From NCBI RefSeq assembly GCF_964204865.1, contig NC_135256.1, forward strand, positions 16,740,001 to 16,804,000: 64,000 nt of DNA, read 5' to 3'. Positions 48,613 to 64,000 of this stretch are shown piece by piece (position 1 is the stretch's first letter; each line of letters begins with the position of its first letter). The translations under genes and the position numbers were made by a program. Below the pieces are notes generated by a model, which searched no databases, was not told the origin of the DNA, and saw nothing but the letters and a program-made list of their open reading frames with translations. The stretch comes from Styela clava. Its lineage: Eukaryota.

Positions 48613-51249
48613 AAAAGCTACAAAATCCTCTCAGATCAATGTTATAATCAATAACCAATAGAATGGTGAAATCTTGTCATTTATTCCAAAGTATTGCACA
48701 TTTTTGAAGCGTTATATACTTTTCATTGCGCGAAACTGTGTCTCAAGGTTATATCTGTATTGTTCAATAATAGTCGCCACAACGCCCTTTAACGTTGTAT
48801 ACGTTCCCATTAAAGCATTCATATATTTTATTATTCGATCTGCTATACACCGTTTGAAAAGCCGAAATACATGAAAGCCAACATAAATATTATAATGACC
48901 CATTATTGTAAGGATATATTTTACTATTCTGTTTTTGTAGTGACCGGTCAGGAAGCAAACAGCATTGATTTAGCGTCAATAAATGAAATAACTTAATGAG
49001 GTGTAATTAATGCAATCGGAAATATTCCCAAATTTATTACGCCTCAAGTGGACGGGCTTATTCTTCATATTGCATAGTTGCCATAAATTGTTGTTGCACA
49101 TACATACTTTATACATGTCTGATCATAAATCAAAGTGTGTGGGCAAATGATTTTTTTAACATTTTTTTCAAAAGTTTTCAATATTATTCATTTGTGGGTT
49201 TTGACGTCAAATATTTACATACATTTTATTCCAGCAAACCATTTAGCAATGGCAGTTGGTATTTTAGATTTTGGCGGTTCCGCTATAAAAGTCGAAAATG
49301 TTTTGATGAGGTACGGTAGACCAGCGAGCCAGCGATACTGTAAAAGATTTCATACCACCGTAGCGACTCGAATCATTTGGTATTTCGATTCACGCTGAGA
49401 CTAGACACATGAATCATCATCGTCAGCACCGGGCCTGGGTAAGCTAGGACAGTCCGGGTACCGGTACTGGTAACACACAGTATCTGTTCTTAGTTTGGTT
49501 CAGGATATGATTTTTGGGGTAATTGTGGTTAAGGCATTTAGTCTTGTACATGCATTTGAGCATCGCTCTATTGTCACACCGTGTACACATATATTTTTAC
49601 CTGATCATTTCAAGGCATTCATTTAACCAGATTAATCAGCTACGGCAGATAACAAACATTTGCAATTTTGTAACTATTTATCAAATGTGAAAGATGTAAT
49701 CCCAAATATAACCTCATTTCGTAATTACAATAATCTTTCTTTGATGTATCGCACTTTACTGAAGAAACATTTCCCAGGTTAACACAACAAAAGCAAGAGT
49801 TCGATCAAAAACAGTGCAAAACAAAGTCGAGATAAACACGGCGCTTTATGTCCAGCGTGTAGTAAGCGAGATATCCCGCTTCGCACCCAAGCTCCCTTAT
49901 GCGTCCTAAACAAACAGTTACACTGCAAAAGCTACAAAAGCTACAAAATCCTCTCAGATCAATGTTATAATCAATAACCAATAGAATGGTGAAATCTTGT
50001 CATTTATTCCAAAGTATTGCACATTTTTGAAGCGTTATATACTTTTCATTGCGCGAAACTGTGTCTCAAGGTTATATCTGTATTGTTCAATAATAGTCGC
50101 CACAACGCCCTTTAACGTTGTATACGTTCCCATTAAAGCATTCATATATTTTATTATTCGATCTGCTATACACCGTTTGAAAAGCCGAAATACATGAAAG
50201 CCAACATAAATATTATAATGACCCATTATTGTAAGGATATATTTTACTATTCTGTTTTTGTAGTGACCGGTCAGGAAGCAAACAGCATTGATTTAGCGTC
50301 AATAAATGAAATAACTTAATGAGGTGTAATTAATGCAATCGGAAATATTCCCAAATTTATTACGCCTCAAGTGGACGGGCTTATTCTTCATATTGCATAG
50401 TTGCCATAAATTGTTGTTGCACATACATACTTTATACATGTCTGATCATAAATCAAAGTGTGTGGGCAAATGATTTTTTTAACATTTTTTTCAAAAGTTT
50501 TCAATATTATTCATTTGTGGGTTTTGACGTCAAATATTTACATACATTTTATTCCAGCAAACCATTTAGCAATGGCAGTTGGTATTTTAGATTTTGGCGG
50601 TTCCGCTATAAAAGTCGAAAATGTTTTGATGAGGTACGGTAGACCAGCGAGCCAGCGATACTGTAAAAGATTTCATACCACCGTAGCGACTCGAATCATT
50701 TGGTATTTCGATTCACGCTGAGACTAGACACATGAATCATCATCGTCAGCACCGGGCCTGGGTAAGCTAGGACAGTCCGGGTACCGGTACTGGTAACACA
50801 CAGTATCTGTTCTTAGTTTGGTTCAGGATATGATTTTTGGGGTAATTGTGGTTAAGGCATTTAGTCTTGTACATGCATTTGAGCATCGCTCTATTGTCAC
50901 ACCGTGTACACATATATTTTTACCTGATCATTTCAAGGCATTCATTTAACCAGATTAATCAGCTACGGCAGATAACAAACATTTGCAATTTTGTAACTAT
51001 TTATCAAATGTGAAAGATGTAATCCCAAATATAACCTCATTTCGTAATTACAATAATCTTTCTTTGATGTATCGCACTTTACTGAAGAAACATTTCCCAG
51101 GTTAACACAACAAAAGCAAGAGTTCGATCAAAAACAGTGCAAAACAAAGTCGAGATAAACACGGCGCTTTATGTCCAGCGTGTAGTAAGCGAGATATCCC
51201 GCTTCGCACCCAAGCTCCCTTATGCGTCCTAAACAAACAGTTACACTGC
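48613..51249. repeat. Direct tandem duplication, two 1314-bp copies (48613-49926; 49936-51249), period 1323
   Basis: Four identical ORF translations recur at +1323. The copies look identical by eye and are separated by AAAAGCTAC (49927-49935), a repeat of the unit's first 9 bp. Confidence 0.93.
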
Positions 51250-51824
51250 TTCCTATTCAAGAGTAAATTTAGTATCATAAAATCGTTTCTGTTACTTCTA
51301 GATCAGATATATTTCCATCTTCTAACTCTATCGAAAACAGTAGCTTTCATAATTACTGCGATAGCACACCTAAAACATGTGAACGGAATACTGATTCGAT
51401 AAACGATTATATCCCTATTAGAATATTCGATATAATTCAACATGCGTATAAATATGCAATTGAAAACCAGCAAGCTATATGATTTTAAAATATTACTATT
51501 TTATTTAAAAAACTACATATACACTTACACTTTGCAACAAAATATTGGACTACAGTAACGTATTTATATGTAAAAGAAAATGTGGTATAAAATCGTCCTA
51601 TTTTATGGATATACACTGAAAATACTGTGATATATACTATGTTTGTCTCAGATTTCTGTTGTCTTTTACTTGACTTGTTCATTCGCATTCACGATTCTGT
51701 GGCAGGTATTTCTGAGCCAGCACAAATATCGGATACATCTCCACAGTGTATGAAAAAGTTGTACTGTACTGAAAATTAGCGCTAGTGCCAATTTAATTTC
51801 TAGAATGAGGAGTAATTCAGATAT

Positions 51825-54800
51825 TTACCATCCATAGTACTTCTTGAACTCAGATGGAGTATTGTCCCTTTCCTTTTGGAAATACTGTTGCATGGTATGA
51901 AATATGTGCATAAAAAACAACGGAAATCGAACAGAAAAAAATCTCCACAACCCATCGCTTTTACTGTTGCGAAATACACGTTTAACATCTTTTTCATCTT
52001 CGTGAAAATGATCGTGACGGTTTCTAATGAATCTGAGCAAGTAAACGCAAAGCTTTGTTTGGAATTGTGACTTTTGCTTTTTTGGTTCTTTCATATGACT
52101 GAAAACTTTTTCGCATATGATCCGCTCACAGAATTGCTGACCCAGTAATTTTTTATCTTCGTCTGAAAGCACTAATTTTTTCAGCCAGTTGTCACTAAAG
52201 ATTGCTTCACCTCTTGCATTAATCTTTTTTATAATTCCCGACCTTTCAATTTTCGTGTTTTTTTCCACAATTGCCGGGTTGATGTAGTCGCTCACATCGC
52301 GAAGAAATATCAGTTTTCGGTCCGCGTCCCAGAAAAAAAGGATGTGAAAGAATTTGGCGAGTATCGGGACGGTCTGTTTGCCACTTGCTCAACATTTTGC
52401 TCACCAAGTCTCTTGCTATATCTGGATCCTCGTATTCAATATTGTCAATATTCAAACATTCGTATTTCTTAATATTGCTACACCAGTCAAGTTCTTCTTT
52501 TCCAAAAGCGTGATCGCCTTTTGATAAAACATAATAAAACACTAAACCGAGAGAAAAAATATCAGTTAATTTTGAAATCTTTTCTTCGTGAATGTAAAAT
52601 TCTGGAGATCCCCACCCGGGCGTACCTCTTCGGTCAGTTGATTGTGTCATTTCTTTTTTGTTCTTGCCCAATAATCTGCTGATTCCAAAATCTACCACCT
52701 TGTATGTTTTCCCATCTAGTGTCATTAAAATATTCTGAGGCTTAATGTCTCTGTGAATCAGGCCATTGTCATCAATGTGCTTCAGTCCTTCAGTGATTTG
52801 TTTCAGGGCATCTTTCGCATCAACGGAGCTAACCTCTTCATACAGAGTGTTTGTCTTGCAAATCTCCATCGCGATATACATCGAATGTAAACCTCGATAC
52901 CGAAAATAGTGGGAAGTTTTGTGAAGAATAACGTTTGGATGCGATTTAAGATCTACCATAAGCTTAGCTTCTCTAATCTCCGCTTCGGTTGCAGGCTTTT
53001 TTATATTTTCCACAATTTTGACGGCTACTTCTTCAGAATGAACCCCGTCAAGTACTCCTCTGAATACTTTGTATCCTTTTCTTAGAGGTTGATTTTCATC
53101 AAAGTAGACATTGTTATTGGCCAGTACGCCTGCAGTAATATTATATGTTAAGTTGCAATATATTACAAATTGAAGGTCGAATACGTGTTGTTTCACTTTC
53201 ATCGCGAATTATTAAACGATAAACCAATGGCATACTGACTGGGAGGGAAAAGAATAAAGATCGAGTCCAAGGTACATAAATAAATACACAACATGAAAAC
53301 AAAAGTCCCAATAGATGTTACATGTGCATGTTAATGTCAGTATATATATGTAATCAGGGAATTTCCATTATTCTTAGCCACCCAACAAAACTCGATTACA
53401 GTCATTATATCACCGTGTTTTACGGATCACTGTATTATAGGGCACACTGTTAATAAATTGCTTAGATTGGGTTTTTATTCATACATAAGGCGCACCGGGA
53501 ACTATAAGACGAACAGCGTTTAAAGTAACACCGATACTGCTGGTGCAAGCAATAAAAATAAGCCCTACTTGATTCATTAGACCAACAATCAATTCTTGAG
53601 AAGAAAGGGACTTAAAGTGTACCTTATTATCCATAAAAGACGATGCTGATATGTTTATTCAAATATCTTGCGAATCTCAACTTTATATTTAGATTATGCA
53701 ATTCTTAGGATCAGTATTGTTATTGTCTACATATTGAACTAAATAGTAAATTTTATCTAAAATTATTTCTGTTGCTAACCTTGAATATTAAAATCTTGTG
53801 GGTGGGAGCTCGTTGGTTGTTCAATCACAGATTGGTTTTCAACTGAAAATAAAAATTGAATTATCTTCGGTGGAAAATCATGAGAAAACTCATGACTAAT
53901 GTAACATATTTTCATCTTGACAAAATAATCAAGATCGTGCCTTTGAAACAAATGAATGGTTAACTATTCCCATATCTCGCAATGAACCCAGATGAAAAGT
54001 TCGTTCGCCATTTGATTATTATGCCATTTTATCGGCTTTCCTGACTATCAGAGTAATTATAAAATCGCAACTAAGTTTTATTGCTAGATTTTTTCACAGA
54101 ACACATTTTTAATTATTGTAATATATATATATATATTTCGTAATTTCTGCGTGACTAAAAGTTTAAAAAAGGCACCATTTTTAGAAAGATAACATATTAA
54201 TTTTAAACTTGTATATTATATAATGTTTTACATTCCAGGTGAAGTAATTTTAATTATAATAGCCGTAGCGACACCAATCGAATACCTTGAGTCAAATTCC
54301 TAATATTTCCGTTGACGAATGTGTTGGTGCTAAAAATATAAAAACGTCAGTTGGTTTTATAGTATACAGCAAGTTTCCACTTTATAATGTTATCATAATG
54401 CATTATGTATTTTAGGCAATCGCAAAGGCAAAAGTTTTTTGCGATATGCAAAATATATGGAAACATCAGAAATTTAAGCAAATTTTCTACCACCCTCTCT
54501 TATAAATTTATTGGCCTATGATACTCTTATCCAACACTCCAAACAACTCATGTCCATTTGTATAAAAAAAAAAATCAGTTTGGGTTTCAAACTAATAAAA
54601 ATGTTTAGATATTTTGGTGAAAATGACTTTGCTACTATCTGTGAGTGCGAATTGTTTTTAACTTCTGGATGCCATATTAGATCCTGATTTACACTCGTTT
54701 TCCGTAGTTATTTATGACGTTAATAATAGCCCCGCCGTTTTCAGCCACTTTCTTTGGTGAATTCGATGGAGAAGAAGACTTGACGATTGGCGGAGTTTCA

Positions 54801-57800
54801 TCGTTTCCTAAATATGGTGTTTATTTGTCGATTAGTAATATCAGATAAATTAATAATAATCACAAACCTTTCCGAAACCGAGCGTTACTCTCAGGGTACT
54901 GATTACCCGATGGTTGTGCACTTATAAAAAGCCAATGTGCTTCAACTATATGTTATTATTAATACTTAATCGCAGTCAGATATGTGAAGACACTGATCAT
55001 GTTGAAAAACTTTCACGAAAATATCAACAATTATAAGAACAGAAATAAATTGTTTGAATTAACAGTGAATAAATTGATATTATTATATAGCACCTGTATT
55101 TTTGAATTCTGGATTCTTTTCTCAATGAAACATTTTCACTACCTGTAACAGTCCTATAGGATATCACAATGTACCTATATTTTCAGGAAACACCCTGTAC
55201 AAGCCCAAGAAAAAGAATGCACGTGTGTTGTACTATGGTGTGTGATTTGATAGGATCAGAAATAAATGACACGCATGGCTAAACTGACCCAGGTTGCAAA
55301 ACCGCGAATTCGTTTTCAATTCTTTCTATAACCAGTTAGTACATTTCTGCAGCTTGGAAAAAGCCTCAGATGCAAAGGTATTTATTTTATGTCAGCACCA
55401 TCTGCAGAGAGGAAACGTGTAGCACACTTTTTCTCTTTAAAGCCCAGAGAAATGCTCATCTTGGTTTTAAATGCATTTAAAGTAGGCTACTCATCATTTC
55501 AGCAACAAACTTAACTCTGCTTTGCAACTCACAGTTCAAATTGCTTATGAGTAATGTCTATTAATAATGTATTGTCAATTCTAGTTGATATGTATATTCA
55601 ACATGGTACATGTTTGGATAATCACTGACCTATGTGGACATGCATAAAAAAACAAATGTCAATTAATTAACTGTTTCTACTGAAAAAGAATGTACATAGG
55701 TATGTTTGAATCGCTGACAATGTTACGTCTCGTCATTTTCTTCACAAAATGACGGTACGGAGAATTGTTCGAGACCATAAGTACCTGGTTTTTCTTGGAG
55801 GAGATCTGGTATTGCAGCTCCAGTTGCCGTATTCGTTGGTATCGACTCATCCGGATTATTGCTAATGCGGTGTTCTGAAAAAGATTTTGGGATGTGACTT
55901 TGGTATGCGATCTCAGCAGTTCTGTGATTTCAGCATTAATCTAACCTTAACTCAACAATGCCAGGGTTAGGGTTGGGACCTGAATTCTGTGAGATTGTCG
56001 TCATGAGATAAAAAGCATACCAAAGCGGAACCACAAAAGTTTACGCCTCACGGCATGATTATGTCTTGGTATGATCTCTACCCCGTCTGGCATATATATA
56101 TAAAACGATATCTTATCTTTCGTTTTTTTTTGCAAATTAACATCGAAAACAGTGACAGGAGTTTACTTGTGATCTGTCACCACTTATTTATCTATTTATT
56201 GTTTCGATTGAGTCTGATAATCATTTCAAAAGATTTCCCGTGACGTCACAAATTGAAAATTAAGGAGATCTGCAACATAACCAGGTGACATAGTCATAGT
56301 GTACCAAAATAAATTTTGCTAGACCCTGAATTCTTTTGTTGAATCCAGAGTCTTCTCTTCCGAGACACAGATTTGTGAACAAGTAAATCGTTGGTTAATC
56401 GCATCGGTTAAATATTAATGAAATGTATTTTTAATTAGATCAACTGATAATTCAAATGCTTTTGCTCATTTCAATTCACACATGTTTACAAGTACTTACC
56501 ATTTACCAACTTTTTCATTTTCAATAGCATTACTTACCACTATGTGAAATTGAATAATCAGCCGTCTTGAAAAAAATTTGTTTTTCAAAAGCTGTGATGT
56601 CACGGTATGACTATGAAAATCGTCGCCATATTATTCATACATTAATTTTAGTCCCTCGGCATGGCGTTGTAATTGATCATTGTAGCACGTTATTGTTTTC
56701 TACAGCACGCAATTGACACAACATGTCTTCCAAAACGGGTATTATAGTGTCGATGATGATAAATGTTCGTAAATTATGTCGCTCTGAATCGGTGTCTATA
56801 GAAAGCTTTTCAACAATTGCATGAGTGTTGATTATGCACATTCTCAGTATGTCGGCCGCGTCTTTTTCACACATCATCGACAAGCATTTGTACATTACGA
56901 ATGATCGAATCCACTTAGAATATCTGTAATGTTTTTCTGCTCATTGTTTTATTTGGTCTTGGGTAATTATAAATTCTGTGCAGTAATTCGCGATGCTCTC
57001 AATGACGCTGATCTGATGTTTCTGATGACATTTTATACGTAATTCGGCAATTTCTTGTAAAGTCAACCAGCAATACCATGGATCTTTCTGAATTTTTTGC
57101 AGGTCCTGTGAAGTTTCCAAAGCTAATTCGAATTGTTCATTTTGAAGCTGAGAACTTGCCCTTTCTGTAAGAAGTAAAAAATTACGGTTAGCAATGTCGA
57201 CCATTGATTAATAAAAAGATGGACGAGGTTGCTTATATAGGTAATGCAACCAACTTAAATATGAGAATTACCCATATTTCATCCTCCTAGTATTGGGCGC
57301 GACTCAGCTGTGTTGGCTTAGCAAATGTCACATTTCAGGTTCAAGTTCCATGCCCCCTCCTCGCTCAGCAATGTGGAGTAAATTTAGTTATAAGTTAATG
57401 CCGAAGCGGAAAGTTTCCCATCTCACCAAAATAATAGTAGTTACATGCATATCATTTATCATTAGATATCAATATCTGCTTGTATAGGGCCTTGTTTGGA
57501 GCGAAAACTAAACATCGTGGTATTACTGATTTTTATTCCAGTCACATAACGAGGAAATTACAACAGCCAAAAAATTGCTTCATGAACTTGAGAGGATTCT
57601 ACAGTGGAGCTGTAGCACCACAACGCAATGAATTCTTGCAGTAGTGAATTCTCGTATAAAATAGAACTACACGGTTGTGTTTCTGTTTCATTGATTTAAA
57701 GCACTTGTTGACGGGAATAAAAACAAAGAAAAACAGCAAGATATAAACCTCTAAGTTCTTTTATCAGCAATCTTTTTTTAGAGGCTTCGTCTTCAAATTC

Positions 57801-58127
57801 TGAAATAAAGCAAAATTTGCTAATATGTTTCGCCACGCGTCATGCCATAAAGAGTTAATGTTAATTGGACTCAAAATGTTGCATATTACAAGTGCCTACT
57901 TTCCTTATGCTTTAGTGTAAACTCAAATTTATAGATGCTTAGCTAGAATCTGAGATGCAAAAGCTGGAGAAATGCATCGCCGATATGTGCAACAATCATA
58001 ATTCATTGTCACGAAAATAATCACATTTATTAAAACTACGTATACATGCATTTATGCAATCGTTTGAAAACGCAAAATGTATTTTATTTTGGATATATGA
58101 AGCGTATAACTTACCAGGTTTTGACAT
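51825..58127 (-). CDS. IRE1/RNase L-family kinase + KEN endoribonuclease lacking luminal, TM and ankyrin domains (~590 aa if the 1-nt frameshift at 52333-52339 is corrected)
   Basis: Phase-consistent exons 58115-58127 (ATG, MSKP), 57749-57799, 55785-55874, 55094-55142, 54868-54920, 54693-54807, 54286-54329, 53780-53842 and 51825-53129. Kinase motifs VAVK, HRDIKPQNIL, DFG, GTPGWGSPE, DIFSLGLVFYYVLSKGDHAFG. Removing one T gives HPFFWDADRKLIFLRDVSD, then KEN motifs LLRFIRNRHDH and FFSVRFP. Confidence 0.82.
53413..53643. mobile_element. Degenerate Tc2/pogo-like MITE in kinase intron
   Basis: CCGTGTTTTACGGA left end, internal ATAAGGCGCAC motif, right end GTGTACCTTATTATCCATAAAAGACG. Confidence 0.45.
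56620..57204 (-). pseudogene. Intronless helical (TPR-like?) protein pseudogene nested in an intron of the kinase-RNase gene
   Basis: ORFs 56941-57204 and 56677-56895 are in the same frame, split by one TGA, giving ~175 codons of amphipathic-helix-like sequence. Further stops follow downstream. Confidence 0.5.
57295..57430 (+). mobile_element. Possible tRNA-derived SINE head
   Basis: A-box-like TCAGCTGTGTTGG followed by B-box-like GGTTCAAGTTCC. No intact cloverleaf. Confidence 0.3.
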
Positions 58128-60617
58128 TCCAGCTTTGTTTTGTTATGAATATATTTAAATCGGCATGTTGAGCTCGAGACTTTTTTCTATCATTAAATCT
58201 CAAAAATTCTATCTCACAGAAAACTAAACGGAGTAATTCACCAACTCAATTATTCCACACAAAGACGGAACACTTGCATTAAAAACTTTGCGAAAAGTTG
58301 GGTGTTTAAACAAAGTTTGAATGCATATGATCTCTGCAAGCATCTATTATTATTTATAGAACCAAATTATTTCCTGTCTTACATTGCCTGTCGATTATAA
58401 TATTACATTCTGAATAAATGGGAGCACAATAGAAATACATATGTTTCATTACCTTGACAACATTTGATTTTTCCATAGAACTATTCATGCTTTAACTCCA
58501 AACGAGACTCACAAACTCAGTCAAGATTATTCGAAATAAAACAATTCTGTTCGGCGCAGAGATTTGAAGGTATCGCGTGAATAAGAATATTTTATTCAAA
58601 ACATACAACTATTAAGGACAGTGACTTGTTCTGCAAAAATCACGTCCTAAATATATTAATATAAACCAGAATTACAAATAGTTTGATCTTTGTGTATTTC
58701 GAATTTCGTACATAAAGTATATATTATAATAGTAAATTTAAAATTTTATGTTTAAACACCAAAATCTGAAAACAAATTCGTTAAATTCACCATGTTCCTC
58801 AGCTGACAATAAAAAAAATTGTATGGTAACAAGAATAAGTAACGGATGAATATAAATACAATTCGGCGGTTTATCATTAGTATGTTGCACTCGCCCCTAA
58901 ATATATATCGGTTGCATCAGATTAGTTGAATAAGTTGATCAAATTAAACGACTGTTTCTTTGTCACAACAAAATGTTTTTTCTTTTTAAATGGAAGCTTT
59001 TTGCTTAACAGACATTGGTAGCAATAGTGATTTGGTAAATATCCTATTCCTATTATCCGAGAACAAGATAAAGTATTTTTTTAGTAAAGAAGACACACCA
59101 AAAGCTTTTTAACTCAAATTTTGAGGAAATGAATACAAAACAGTTTCAGTCCGATCTTTCGTGTACAACACAGACCATGAATGAAATAAAAAAAAATAAA
59201 GAACGCAAACAATGATGACGGAAAAATTGGTAGAAGGGCCAAAACCCAGAGAAAGGTTCATAGCGGATGATGTAACCAGCGTTTGTGCCCCATTCACCTA
59301 CACTCACACAAATGGAAAACACATCTCGACAATTCAACTGAAAGGAACAAATTCATAAACAGCACACATGAATACGAGAAATAAAATTCACGGGCAAAGT
59401 GTACTTGTTAAGTTGTAAATAATTTTGCTGAATTGCAAATCCCAGTAATAATATCTAGCTGCTGCTGTTTATTGGTAAACGAACAAAGCTGAGAATGAAC
59501 AACAAACATAAAAACTCGAAAAGTCGTTTAGAGCATTGCTTCTTGTGTAACAAAATTGGTTCGAATTCAGAAAATCTTCATTTAAAAATTTAATCATTTG
59601 CCTATGATGGTCAGTCATAAAATTAACTTGGTTCTGACACCAATTACCGACTCAAAATTTCCAGTATATATGCAGTTATCTCGGCTTCTCTACACTGATA
59701 TCTCAAACCAACAACTCCTCAGTTATGAAAAACTTTTTGTTTTTCTTCATAGATAACTCTTGTTTTCCAAGATCTCGGTTCACAGATGAGTAAATAACGG
59801 TCTTTACTCGCAGATACATTATGGATCACGTGCTTTTTTCATGAAATATATTGAGTCAGATCTCTCCCTGCGTTGTTGTCATTTTTGATTCCATTCCATG
59901 TTTAATCTTAATACAACCAAACTCTCTAATACCATGTGATAATATGGCCCCCACCTCATGAAGAAATTTGATTGGAACTCGGATAGACATTTTGGTAATA
60001 CTCCAATATGTGGCAAACAATCGTATTCGGCGAAATATAAAATTTAGATAACAGAATACCAAATTTCATCAAATTAATAGGTATGTTCCTCAAAGCTTCA
60101 TTAATTAAACATTTCCAACACTTAAACGTAAAGAAAATACATTTTTGAATTTTGAACTTTTGTAACTTTTTATTGGAGTCTATTAATGAATATTGTTTCA
60201 AACTATGGTTATATTACCAAATTAGAAAGAGCCTATTTATATTATGCATTATTTTCACATTGGAATAATAAAAGGAGAACAAACAATTTTGCTAAAATTG
60301 CTCTATATATGTGTTTCTACATGCACAGATCACAACGCAAGGCTGCAGGAGTTAAAATTACCCGTTGACCGAGCCGAGCCACTGGATTACACGCAGGCAG
60401 AATAGCTGAGAACTAAACTAGATAACTTGAAATGATCATGATGGCATACCGGTAATAACTATCAAGTCATCGTAGATTTTATATTATGAAGCTTCTACCA
60501 TCTAATTAAAGTAATACAACAATATTCCATATTAGTAAGCTTCTGATTGAAAAACACAAAGTCACAAATACGGCATCCATACCGTGTGAATGACATTTTT
60601 ATTATAAAATAATGTAC

Positions 60618-62221: not shown

Positions 62222-64000
62222 GATCAAATCAATCAAGTTTTTTTTCAACCAACAAAAAATAAATAACACAGGCACAAATTACAAAAAAATAATAAAGTAC
62301 ACAATTTTACTGTGGAACGGAAGTCGCAGGGGATCCTAATGGGGGGAACTACTAGTTGCAGAATTTGTTATTAAACGAGGGAAATTATTATTGAAGTTAT
62401 TTGAGGTTTGGGCAAAAATTATAGAGCATGAACATAGCAACAATACAATAATAATATAATTTGAATACGTAAGGGAATAAACCCAGTCTTTTTTTCATTT
62501 ATCCATAGCCATTAAGTAGATGAATTTTTAATCGCTTACTGAATGTTGCAAGCGAGTTTATTAAAATATTAGACGGAAATTTTCCCCGAATTCAAATGCC
62601 TTTTGTTTTGAGCGTTTTTTTGTTAATGAAAATGAACATCGAGGCATGAAATAAGTCCTTTTTGTAACACTTCTTGTGGCACGGCTATGGATGGTTGAAA
62701 TTTTTGTAAAAAAATTTTGAAATATAGGGGGTAGCATATGATTTTCGGAGCGATACATAAATTTTGCAATTTCAGAAAGATAAATATCGTTCAGTTGTAA
62801 TACTCCACACTGCTTGTATAAGAGTGAGTTAGGAACATGCTGTGATTCTGCAGATAGCATGCAGCGAATTGCCTTGTTATACAGAATTACTAGTGGTTTT
62901 AGCGTAGTTTTATTAGTTCCTCTCCAACTTATAATGCCATATTTCAGATTGAGTATATAAATATAGTATACAATTTTTAATGCATCGATACCGAGGATTC
63001 TACGTAATTTATACAATATTCCGAGTGATTGTAAAACTTTTTTACATATGTGATCAATATGATATTTCCGTGACAAGTTCTCATCTGGGATTATACCCAA
63101 ATACTTAATACATTTTGTTCTTTCTATCTTTTTATTGTCAAATGGAACTGCCAAGTAATTTGCCTGGAACCAAAAACCACGAATTTTGTGTTTGCAAGGT
63201 TTGAAGATAATTTATTACTTTTTAGCCATAAGTTGACCATCTCCATTTTTTTATTGATCGAAATCTTCAGTTTTCCACAGCATGCAGCAGAATCAATGAG
63301 CGCGGTATCTTCTGCAAAAAGAGTCGAGTCTAACCTAGTTGCTGCTGGTAAATCATTGATATATATTGGAAATAGAAGCGGTCCCAGAGTACTTCCCTGT
63401 GGAATACCACATGTTATGTATTCGAGCGAAGAGATGCCATCGATGAATTCAATGTACTGTTGTCTCTCACTTAGATATGAGTGTAATATTTTGAGGGGTA
63501 AACCTCAGATTCCATAATGAGACATTTTACAAAGCAAAATTTCATGGTTCACACTGTCAAAAGCTTCAGCCAAGTCTAAAAATACAGCACAGGTAACTCT
63601 GCCTTTTGACAAGTTTTCAAATATTTTTCCTTTCAATTTTGTCACTGCGAGTTCGGTCGAGTAGTCATTTCGGAAACCAAATTGGGATTCATTCAGCCTA
63701 TTTGTTTTGTCAAAGTAGACTGCAAGGCGATTATACAAAAAATATTCATAAATTTTGGCACACTGAGAAAAGAGAGAAATAGGTCGGTAATTATTAGAGT
63801 CAGATTTTGTGCCTTTTTTATGAATCGGTACTACTTTTACTAATTTTATTATTTCAGGAATAAGGATAAATACCTTCCCTAAAACGTTGGTCCTCAGAAT
63901 ATGTGCTGAGTTTACGTTTTTTCTTTATCTGTTCAGGATCTAGTTTGATGTCTAGAATAAAGGATGGTTATTGAAAATTTGAAATTTGTTCCAAAATTTC
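62222..64000 (-). mobile_element. Decayed non-LTR retrotransposon (L2/Crack-like clade) ORF2 RT and 3' UTR
   Basis: NYRPIS, QFGFR..STE, FLDLAEAFDSVNH, GIPQGSTLGPLLF..YINDL, LFAEDT (degenerate FADD), KYLGI..DENLS..HI...LGILYKLR. Broken by stops and frameshifts. 3' end is an A-run plus (TTGA)n-like tail near 62222. Confidence 0.9.

Follow-up and report, generated by a model that had tools for sequence, protein, structure and literature searches.

Does a gene with an IRE1-type kinase followed by a KEN ribonuclease domain, and with no recognizable sensor ahead of them, encode a new kind of soluble enzyme? The question is raised by a locus on the minus strand of a 64,000-nucleotide stretch of the Styela clava genome (contig NC_135256.1, positions 16,740,001 to 16,804,000; hereafter the window, numbered from its first letter), for which a first-pass annotation had proposed one spliced gene, starting at 58127, for a cytosolic kinase-ribonuclease activated by an input other than those of IRE1 and RNase L. 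Both domains are present, in that order, at 51825-53129, but they lie in different reading frames, a feature that the first-pass annotation did not report. The gene is probably a transcribed, divergent, and recently frameshifted member of a set of soluble IRE1-like kinase-KEN genes that has expanded in Styela clava, and is most likely a pseudogene of recent origin, or an allele truncated before the RNase, rather than a new kind of enzyme.

The identity of the two domains is as first proposed (Table 1). The kinase corresponds to residues 149-441 of the NCBI protein XP_077970807.1, to which it is 100% identical, and its best solved relatives are IRE1 kinases (3.8e-28). When it is aligned with human IRE1, the VAVK, HRDIKPQN, and DFG motifs are kept and the Gly-rich loop is shortened, as had been noticed before. 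The KEN segment scores 51.9 bits against Ribonuc_2-5A (PF06479; cut-off, 23.3) and aligns with IRE1 at FFWxxxxxLxFxxDVSD and LLRxxRNxxxH. An AlphaFold model of this segment, for which the input was an alignment of 17 paralog KEN segments, has a predicted local distance difference test (pLDDT) value of 78.5, and the top solved structures that Foldseek returned with it are only IRE1 KEN domains (template-modelling scores, 0.55-0.61). An Rfam scan of 51000-59000 gave no match.

The first-pass description of the ribonuclease active site also stands. The window sequence LLRFIRNRHDH is aligned to LLRAMRNKKHH of IRE1, with R-N-x-x-x-H retained, and the column of the catalytic Tyr is occupied by Phe, with Arg, Asn, and His all kept. 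Because Phe is also found in this column in the intact paralogs L006, L008, and L010 (the last of which is otherwise listed as interrupted), and because the Y1043F substitution in yeast Ire1 slows the enzyme, with a rate ~10-fold lower (PMC3149027), Phe alone is no sign of gene death.

The frame changes at the junction between the domains. This junction contains a run of seven T residues (T7) and reads CAT CCT TTT TTT CTG G, compared with CAT CCT TTT TTC TGG, with six T residues (T6), in the intact paralog L009; in all intact paralogs, H-P-[FY]-F-W is in a single frame. In the window, the kinase frame runs to ...SHPFF and then through 25 unrelated residues up to the stop at 52246, and the KEN frame begins with FFWDADRKL... 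and is open for 170 codons. When two paralog proteins are used as tblastn queries, the change of frame falls exactly at 52333/52337. The same T7 is present in a contig of DNA run X1, which spans 52200-53473 at a depth of 11.8 with 0 gaps and departs from the assembly at two substitutions, 52773 and 53037. Since both of these are supported at full depth, the X1 animal is not the one that was assembled, and a real insertion, not an assembly slip, is thus present in two animals or more. Because the insertion is of a single nucleotide and is shared by a second individual, ordinary decoding would give no kinase-RNase fusion. An intron bypassing the frameshift was considered and rejected, as splicing from the sole good donor, near 52405, would leave the frame shifted (judged by eye). 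The KEN frame is still open and its motifs are intact, which argues that the insertion is recent.

We propose that a one-base insertion, from T6 to T7 exactly at the kinase-KEN junction, would recently have converted an intact gene into the present one. With ordinary decoding, its product would be a protein of ~440 residues in which the IRE1-type kinase is preceded by a short N-terminus of low complexity and followed by 25 nonsense residues, and the intact KEN frame would be left untranslated, not yet decayed. The ancestral, intact gene would have specified a soluble protein of ~590 residues in which, by analogy with IRE1 and RNase L, back-to-back pairing of kinases may have joined two KEN domains and switched on the RNase. 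The public annotation matches the truncated product: XP_077970807.1, which is 441 aa long and named 'putative myosin light chain kinase DDB_G0282429 [Styela clava]', contains no domains other than kinase and terminates at the out-of-frame stop. Because the frameshift is unflagged, the model conceals the KEN domain. The KEN segment is absent from annotated and predicted proteins, the best match among 1.84 billion representatives being 32% identical, and no Logan-derived protein carries it.

The gene has many relatives in its own genome. There are 42 PF06479 matches, which reduce to ~35 loci when split matches are merged, and one of these, L001, is the canonical IRE1 locus, with an open frame of 1268 aa. 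At ~20 loci, a kinase (or kinase-like) domain and KEN share one open exon of 370-515 codons, and the window gene, frameshift aside, has the layout of these intact single-exon paralogs, with kinase, HP[FY]FW, and KEN in the last exon. Other members are interrupted by a frameshift or stop between or within kinase and KEN (L004, C8:18.49 Mb; L007, C1:30.97 Mb; L010, C5:10.21 Mb; and L011, C8:17.61 Mb), and broken copies of this sort are as expected under birth-and-death evolution. Identity between the window gene and any paralog is only 37-42%. In the NCBI annotation, the nearest paralogs (593-675 aa) are called 'IRE1-like' and the others 'uncharacterized'; other family members have clear FN3 repeats, and a related metagenomic protein has TPR repeats. 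Judged by these sequences, the window gene belongs to a lineage-specific Styela clava group of predicted soluble kinase-KEN genes, as the first-pass annotation had suggested. Elsewhere in the family, a tandem array at C3:5774917-5914025 comprises six loci with the KEN match split over two exons, and has near-identical copies 20-35 kb apart.

A quick tree of 33 rows, in which the kinase and KEN pieces of the gene were joined with X at the break and RNase L was not among the rows, places the window gene as a lone long branch in an unresolved polytomy. L001 clusters apart from it, with nematode and fungal IRE1 (support, 93-96), and this grouping of the canonical IRE1 elsewhere rules out a dead duplicate of IRE1. 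The first-pass annotation had named such a duplicate, with a confirmed frameshift and no expression, as the outcome contrary to its proposal: the frameshift is confirmed, but the tree does not show an IRE1 duplicate and a spliced RNA contig exists.

That contig shows that the locus is transcribed, and it is the sole spliced RNA evidence: a single contig of run X7, 214 nt long at a depth of 3.1. It joins position 53129, next to the splice acceptor AG of the last exon at 53131-53130, to exon 6, and exon 6 to an upstream exon ending at 56541, with exons 3-5 skipped. Compared with the assembly, the X7 allele has an in-frame 15-nt insertion in exon 6, and probably 3 nt more where that exon begins. 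In the frame of the 56541 exon that leads into exon 6, a stop lies 22 codons upstream and is followed by no ATG, and the X7 isoform is thus 5' untranslated region or non-productive. XP_077970807.1 maps to seven exons, all with GT-AG borders, and its exons 3-6 are the four middle exons of the first-pass model. The first exon of that model is unsupported: an in-frame TAA does lie five codons before the ATG at 58127, but the NCBI model starts at 57275 and the spliced RNA comes from the exon ending at 56541. Another X7 contig, with 92% identity, spans 58119-58185 and stops just before the donor of that first exon. There are three candidate 5' ends (58127, 57275, and the 56541 exon), none of which adds a known domain.

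Table 1. Features of the kinase-KEN locus in the window, with positions counted from the first letter of the window
Feature	Positions	Strand	Evidence or remarks
First coding exon of the first-pass model (ATGTCAAAACCTG / gtaagt)	58115..58127	-	Splice signal and phase fit; in neither the NCBI model nor the RNA contig
NCBI exon 1 end with annotated start codon (ATG G / gtaatt)	57272..57275	-	Inferred from the first two residues of XP_077970807.1 and the sequence
Adjacent open stretches of 88 and 87 codons, in the same frame, with one TGA between them	56680..57207	-	Helical
NCBI exon 2, cut from a longer helical open frame	57039..57164	-	XP_077970807.1 residues 2-43
3' end of alternative upstream exon, joined to exon 6	56541..56570	-	X7 RNA contig, 30 letters, joint 53843->56541
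Exon 3, Ser/Pro/Asn/Glu-rich	55785..55874	-	XP_077970807.1 residues 44-74; no Pfam match
Exon 4, Asn-rich stretch GGAIINVINNYG	54693..54807	-	XP_077970807.1 residues 75-112; unique in genome; no Pfam match
Exon 5	54286..54329	-	XP_077970807.1 residues 113-126; GT-AG borders
Exon 6 (VENQSVIEQPTSSHPQDFNIQ)	53780..53842	-	Maps to XP_077970807.1; in X7 spliced contig, joined to 53129
Last exon, kinase frame: IRE1-type protein kinase and ~25 out-of-frame residues, stop 52246-52248	52246..53129	-	Pfam Pkinase 3.6e-39
Seven-T run within the conserved HPFFW junction; one-base insertion, shifts the frame	52333..52339	-	Sequence, paralog comparison, tblastn, X1 DNA contig
KEN domain, +1 frame relative to the kinase, 170 open codons, natural stop 51825-51827	51825..52337	-	Ribonuc_2-5A 1.1e-13

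Two observations concern the sequencing runs themselves. The last intron contains a short dispersed repeat (53437-53499), which is flanked by loose ends on either side; its depth is 290-800 in DNA contigs and is also high in the RNA-like runs. This repeat makes up the X6 matches and most X7 matches and explains most of the 5-6% word share of X6-X8. Run X5, which is labelled as another organism, contains 10% of the sampled words of 51700-58300, and may derive from a related species or reflect a conserved part.

With regard to sensor parts, the first-pass statement that luminal, transmembrane, and ankyrin regions are missing agrees with all of our searches, in which exons were searched separately and the NCBI model was used as a whole-protein query. 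The genome's own IRE1 (978 aa in L001), used as a tblastn query, matches only the kinase and KEN in the window, with no luminal similarity. Pfam gave no match in the N-terminus of XP_077970807.1 or in 12 minus-strand open stretches upstream, and in neither these stretches nor the NCBI model did it report an ankyrin family. Crude hydropathy, which is not a transmembrane predictor, revealed no hydrophobic stretch of transmembrane strength in XP_077970807.1 or its closest paralogs, and the maximum 19-residue Kyte-Doolittle mean in XP_077970807.1 is 1.30, inside the kinase. No conservation of the 148-residue N-terminus was seen upstream of the four closest paralogs, and tblastn with paralogs gave no match in the window to their N-terminal exons, FN3-like or otherwise. 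The idea of a paired amyloid motif was tested by searching the rest of the genome for copies of the Asn-rich exon, which gave none, and was discarded. The two helical open stretches at 56680-57207, from the first of which NCBI exon 2 takes 42 codons, have no genome copy, no Pfam match, and no similarity to 296 collected relatives; one of them gives a weak TPR-like lead, and together they may be the relic of a lost helical N-terminal domain. X1 has a 3-nt deletion at 57009-57011.

Several observations count against a broken copy and bear on the alternatives to it. The T run has been seen in two individuals only, those of the assembly and X1, and a T6 allele may segregate; among the runs examined, no RNA contig spans the T run; the coding variants seen in the kinase are too few (n=4) to gauge constraint; and the kinase keeps all catalytic motifs in a gene that is spliced and annotated, such that a kinase-only product may function. 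This product could be a soluble kinase of the IRE1-like type, or could pair with kinase-KEN paralogs as their partner or decoy, while the KEN segment decays, and it is consistent with both the transcription of the gene and the complete protein modelled by NCBI. However, the shortened Gly-rich loop, the nonsense sequence of the 25-residue tail, and the finding that 4/4 observed coding variants are non-synonymous argue against a functional kinase, and protein library searches gave no ortholog elsewhere that would show conservation; we regard this explanation as rather unlikely. It is also unlikely, and somewhat more so, that the gene still specifies an intact soluble kinase-KEN effector, with T6 the common form and the extra T either an allele carried by the animals sequenced or an error common to the sequence data. 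Homopolymer runs are prone to error and mutation, the KEN frame has no interruption and retains R-N-x-x-x-H, and the raw reads of X9 have zero depth over the T run, all of which fit this possibility, but T7 is present in the assembly and is homozygous by depth in the second individual, and the KEN segment appears in neither the NCBI annotation nor any Logan-derived protein.

Recoding offers a further route to a fused product, through a +1 slip of tRNA-Phe from UUU to UUC, or through loss of one U of U7 by the polymerase, so that the RNase would be made conditionally. The shift needed is indeed +1, its site is a slippery UUU UUU C run, tRNA-Phe pairs well with the +1 codon UUC, and the downstream frame is intact; nonetheless, the junction is in frame in all of the paralogs, none of which has such an arrangement, there is no known stimulatory element, and seven U residues are short for slippage by polymerase II. 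We consider recoding highly improbable. A more elaborate proposal joins these last two explanations: if a T6 allele or recoding at U7 gave the full soluble kinase-KEN protein, its unique Asn-rich exon might drive self-assembly and turn the RNase on, which would make it an RNase L-like effector with a new trigger in a ~35-gene ascidian immune family. This, too, seems quite improbable, if less so than recoding.

If the gene is a recently frameshifted family member, as we favor, the locus alone matters little, being a broken copy whose kinase, without KEN, is already in the public annotation. What gives it value is that it marks a family of soluble IRE1-like kinase-ribonucleases in ascidians, large and unstudied, in which varied N-termini and frequent gene death form a pattern typical of immune effector families, and which could show how chordates arranged RNase L-like defence before the OAS-RNase L pathway. 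As to its surroundings, frames with reverse-transcriptase motifs at 62561-63738 on the minus strand represent a fragment of a retrotransposon of the long interspersed nuclear element (LINE) type, ~4.5 kb upstream of the gene. Downstream of the gene, on the plus strand, two identical 87-codon frames 1.3 kb apart (49135-49398 and 50458-50721) point to a recent tandem duplication.

Compared with IRE1, the window gene has a kinase that is nearest to IRE1 kinases, a KEN domain directly after the HPFFW junction with R-N-x-x-x-H, and a KEN model that superposes on that of IRE1. It differs in having no signal peptide, luminal domain, or transmembrane helix in the searches described above, in having its kinase and KEN out of frame and Phe for the catalytic Tyr, and in not grouping with true IRE1, for which the genome has the separate gene L001. 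With RNase L it shares solubility, a kinase-like domain together with KEN, and membership of PF06479, but its annotated model and upstream frames lack ankyrin repeats, and its kinase motifs are those of an active kinase, whereas RNase L has a pseudokinase domain. RNase L proper is a jawed-vertebrate clade (PMC10400998).

The closest likeness is to the IRE1-like paralogs (P0177-P0181, C8 near 3.9 Mb, LOC120345055), which are the nearest by kinase (39-42% identity) and resemble the window gene in their short Gly loop (PL[RK]KGYK), in being soluble, in having a low-complexity N-terminus, and in encoding kinase and KEN in the last exon. These paralogs, unlike the window gene, are intact and have Tyr at the catalytic position; they have an FN3-like stretch before the kinase, seen by eye and giving no Pfam fn3 match, which the window gene lacks, and their N-terminal regions show no detectable similarity to that of the window gene. 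The novelty claimed in the first-pass annotation is overstated, because close paralogs are already called IRE1-like at NCBI and kinase-RNases other than IRE1 and RNase L have been published (PMC10400998, PMC3710099). Proteins with a kinase and a PF06479 RNase but no ankyrin repeats occur outside IRE1 and RNase L in many eukaryotes, including metazoan clades, and RNase L is reported to descend from a protein of this type that acquired ankyrin repeats (Han lab, PNAS 2023, PMC10400998). KEN belongs to the HEPN superfamily, and a lineage-specific expansion of KEN has been described in the tunicate Oikopleura (Anantharaman et al. 2013, PMC3710099). Neither of these studies mentions Styela or the window gene, and the Oikopleura expansion is of KEN without a kinase, in contrast to the Styela clava family, in which kinase and KEN are encoded together.

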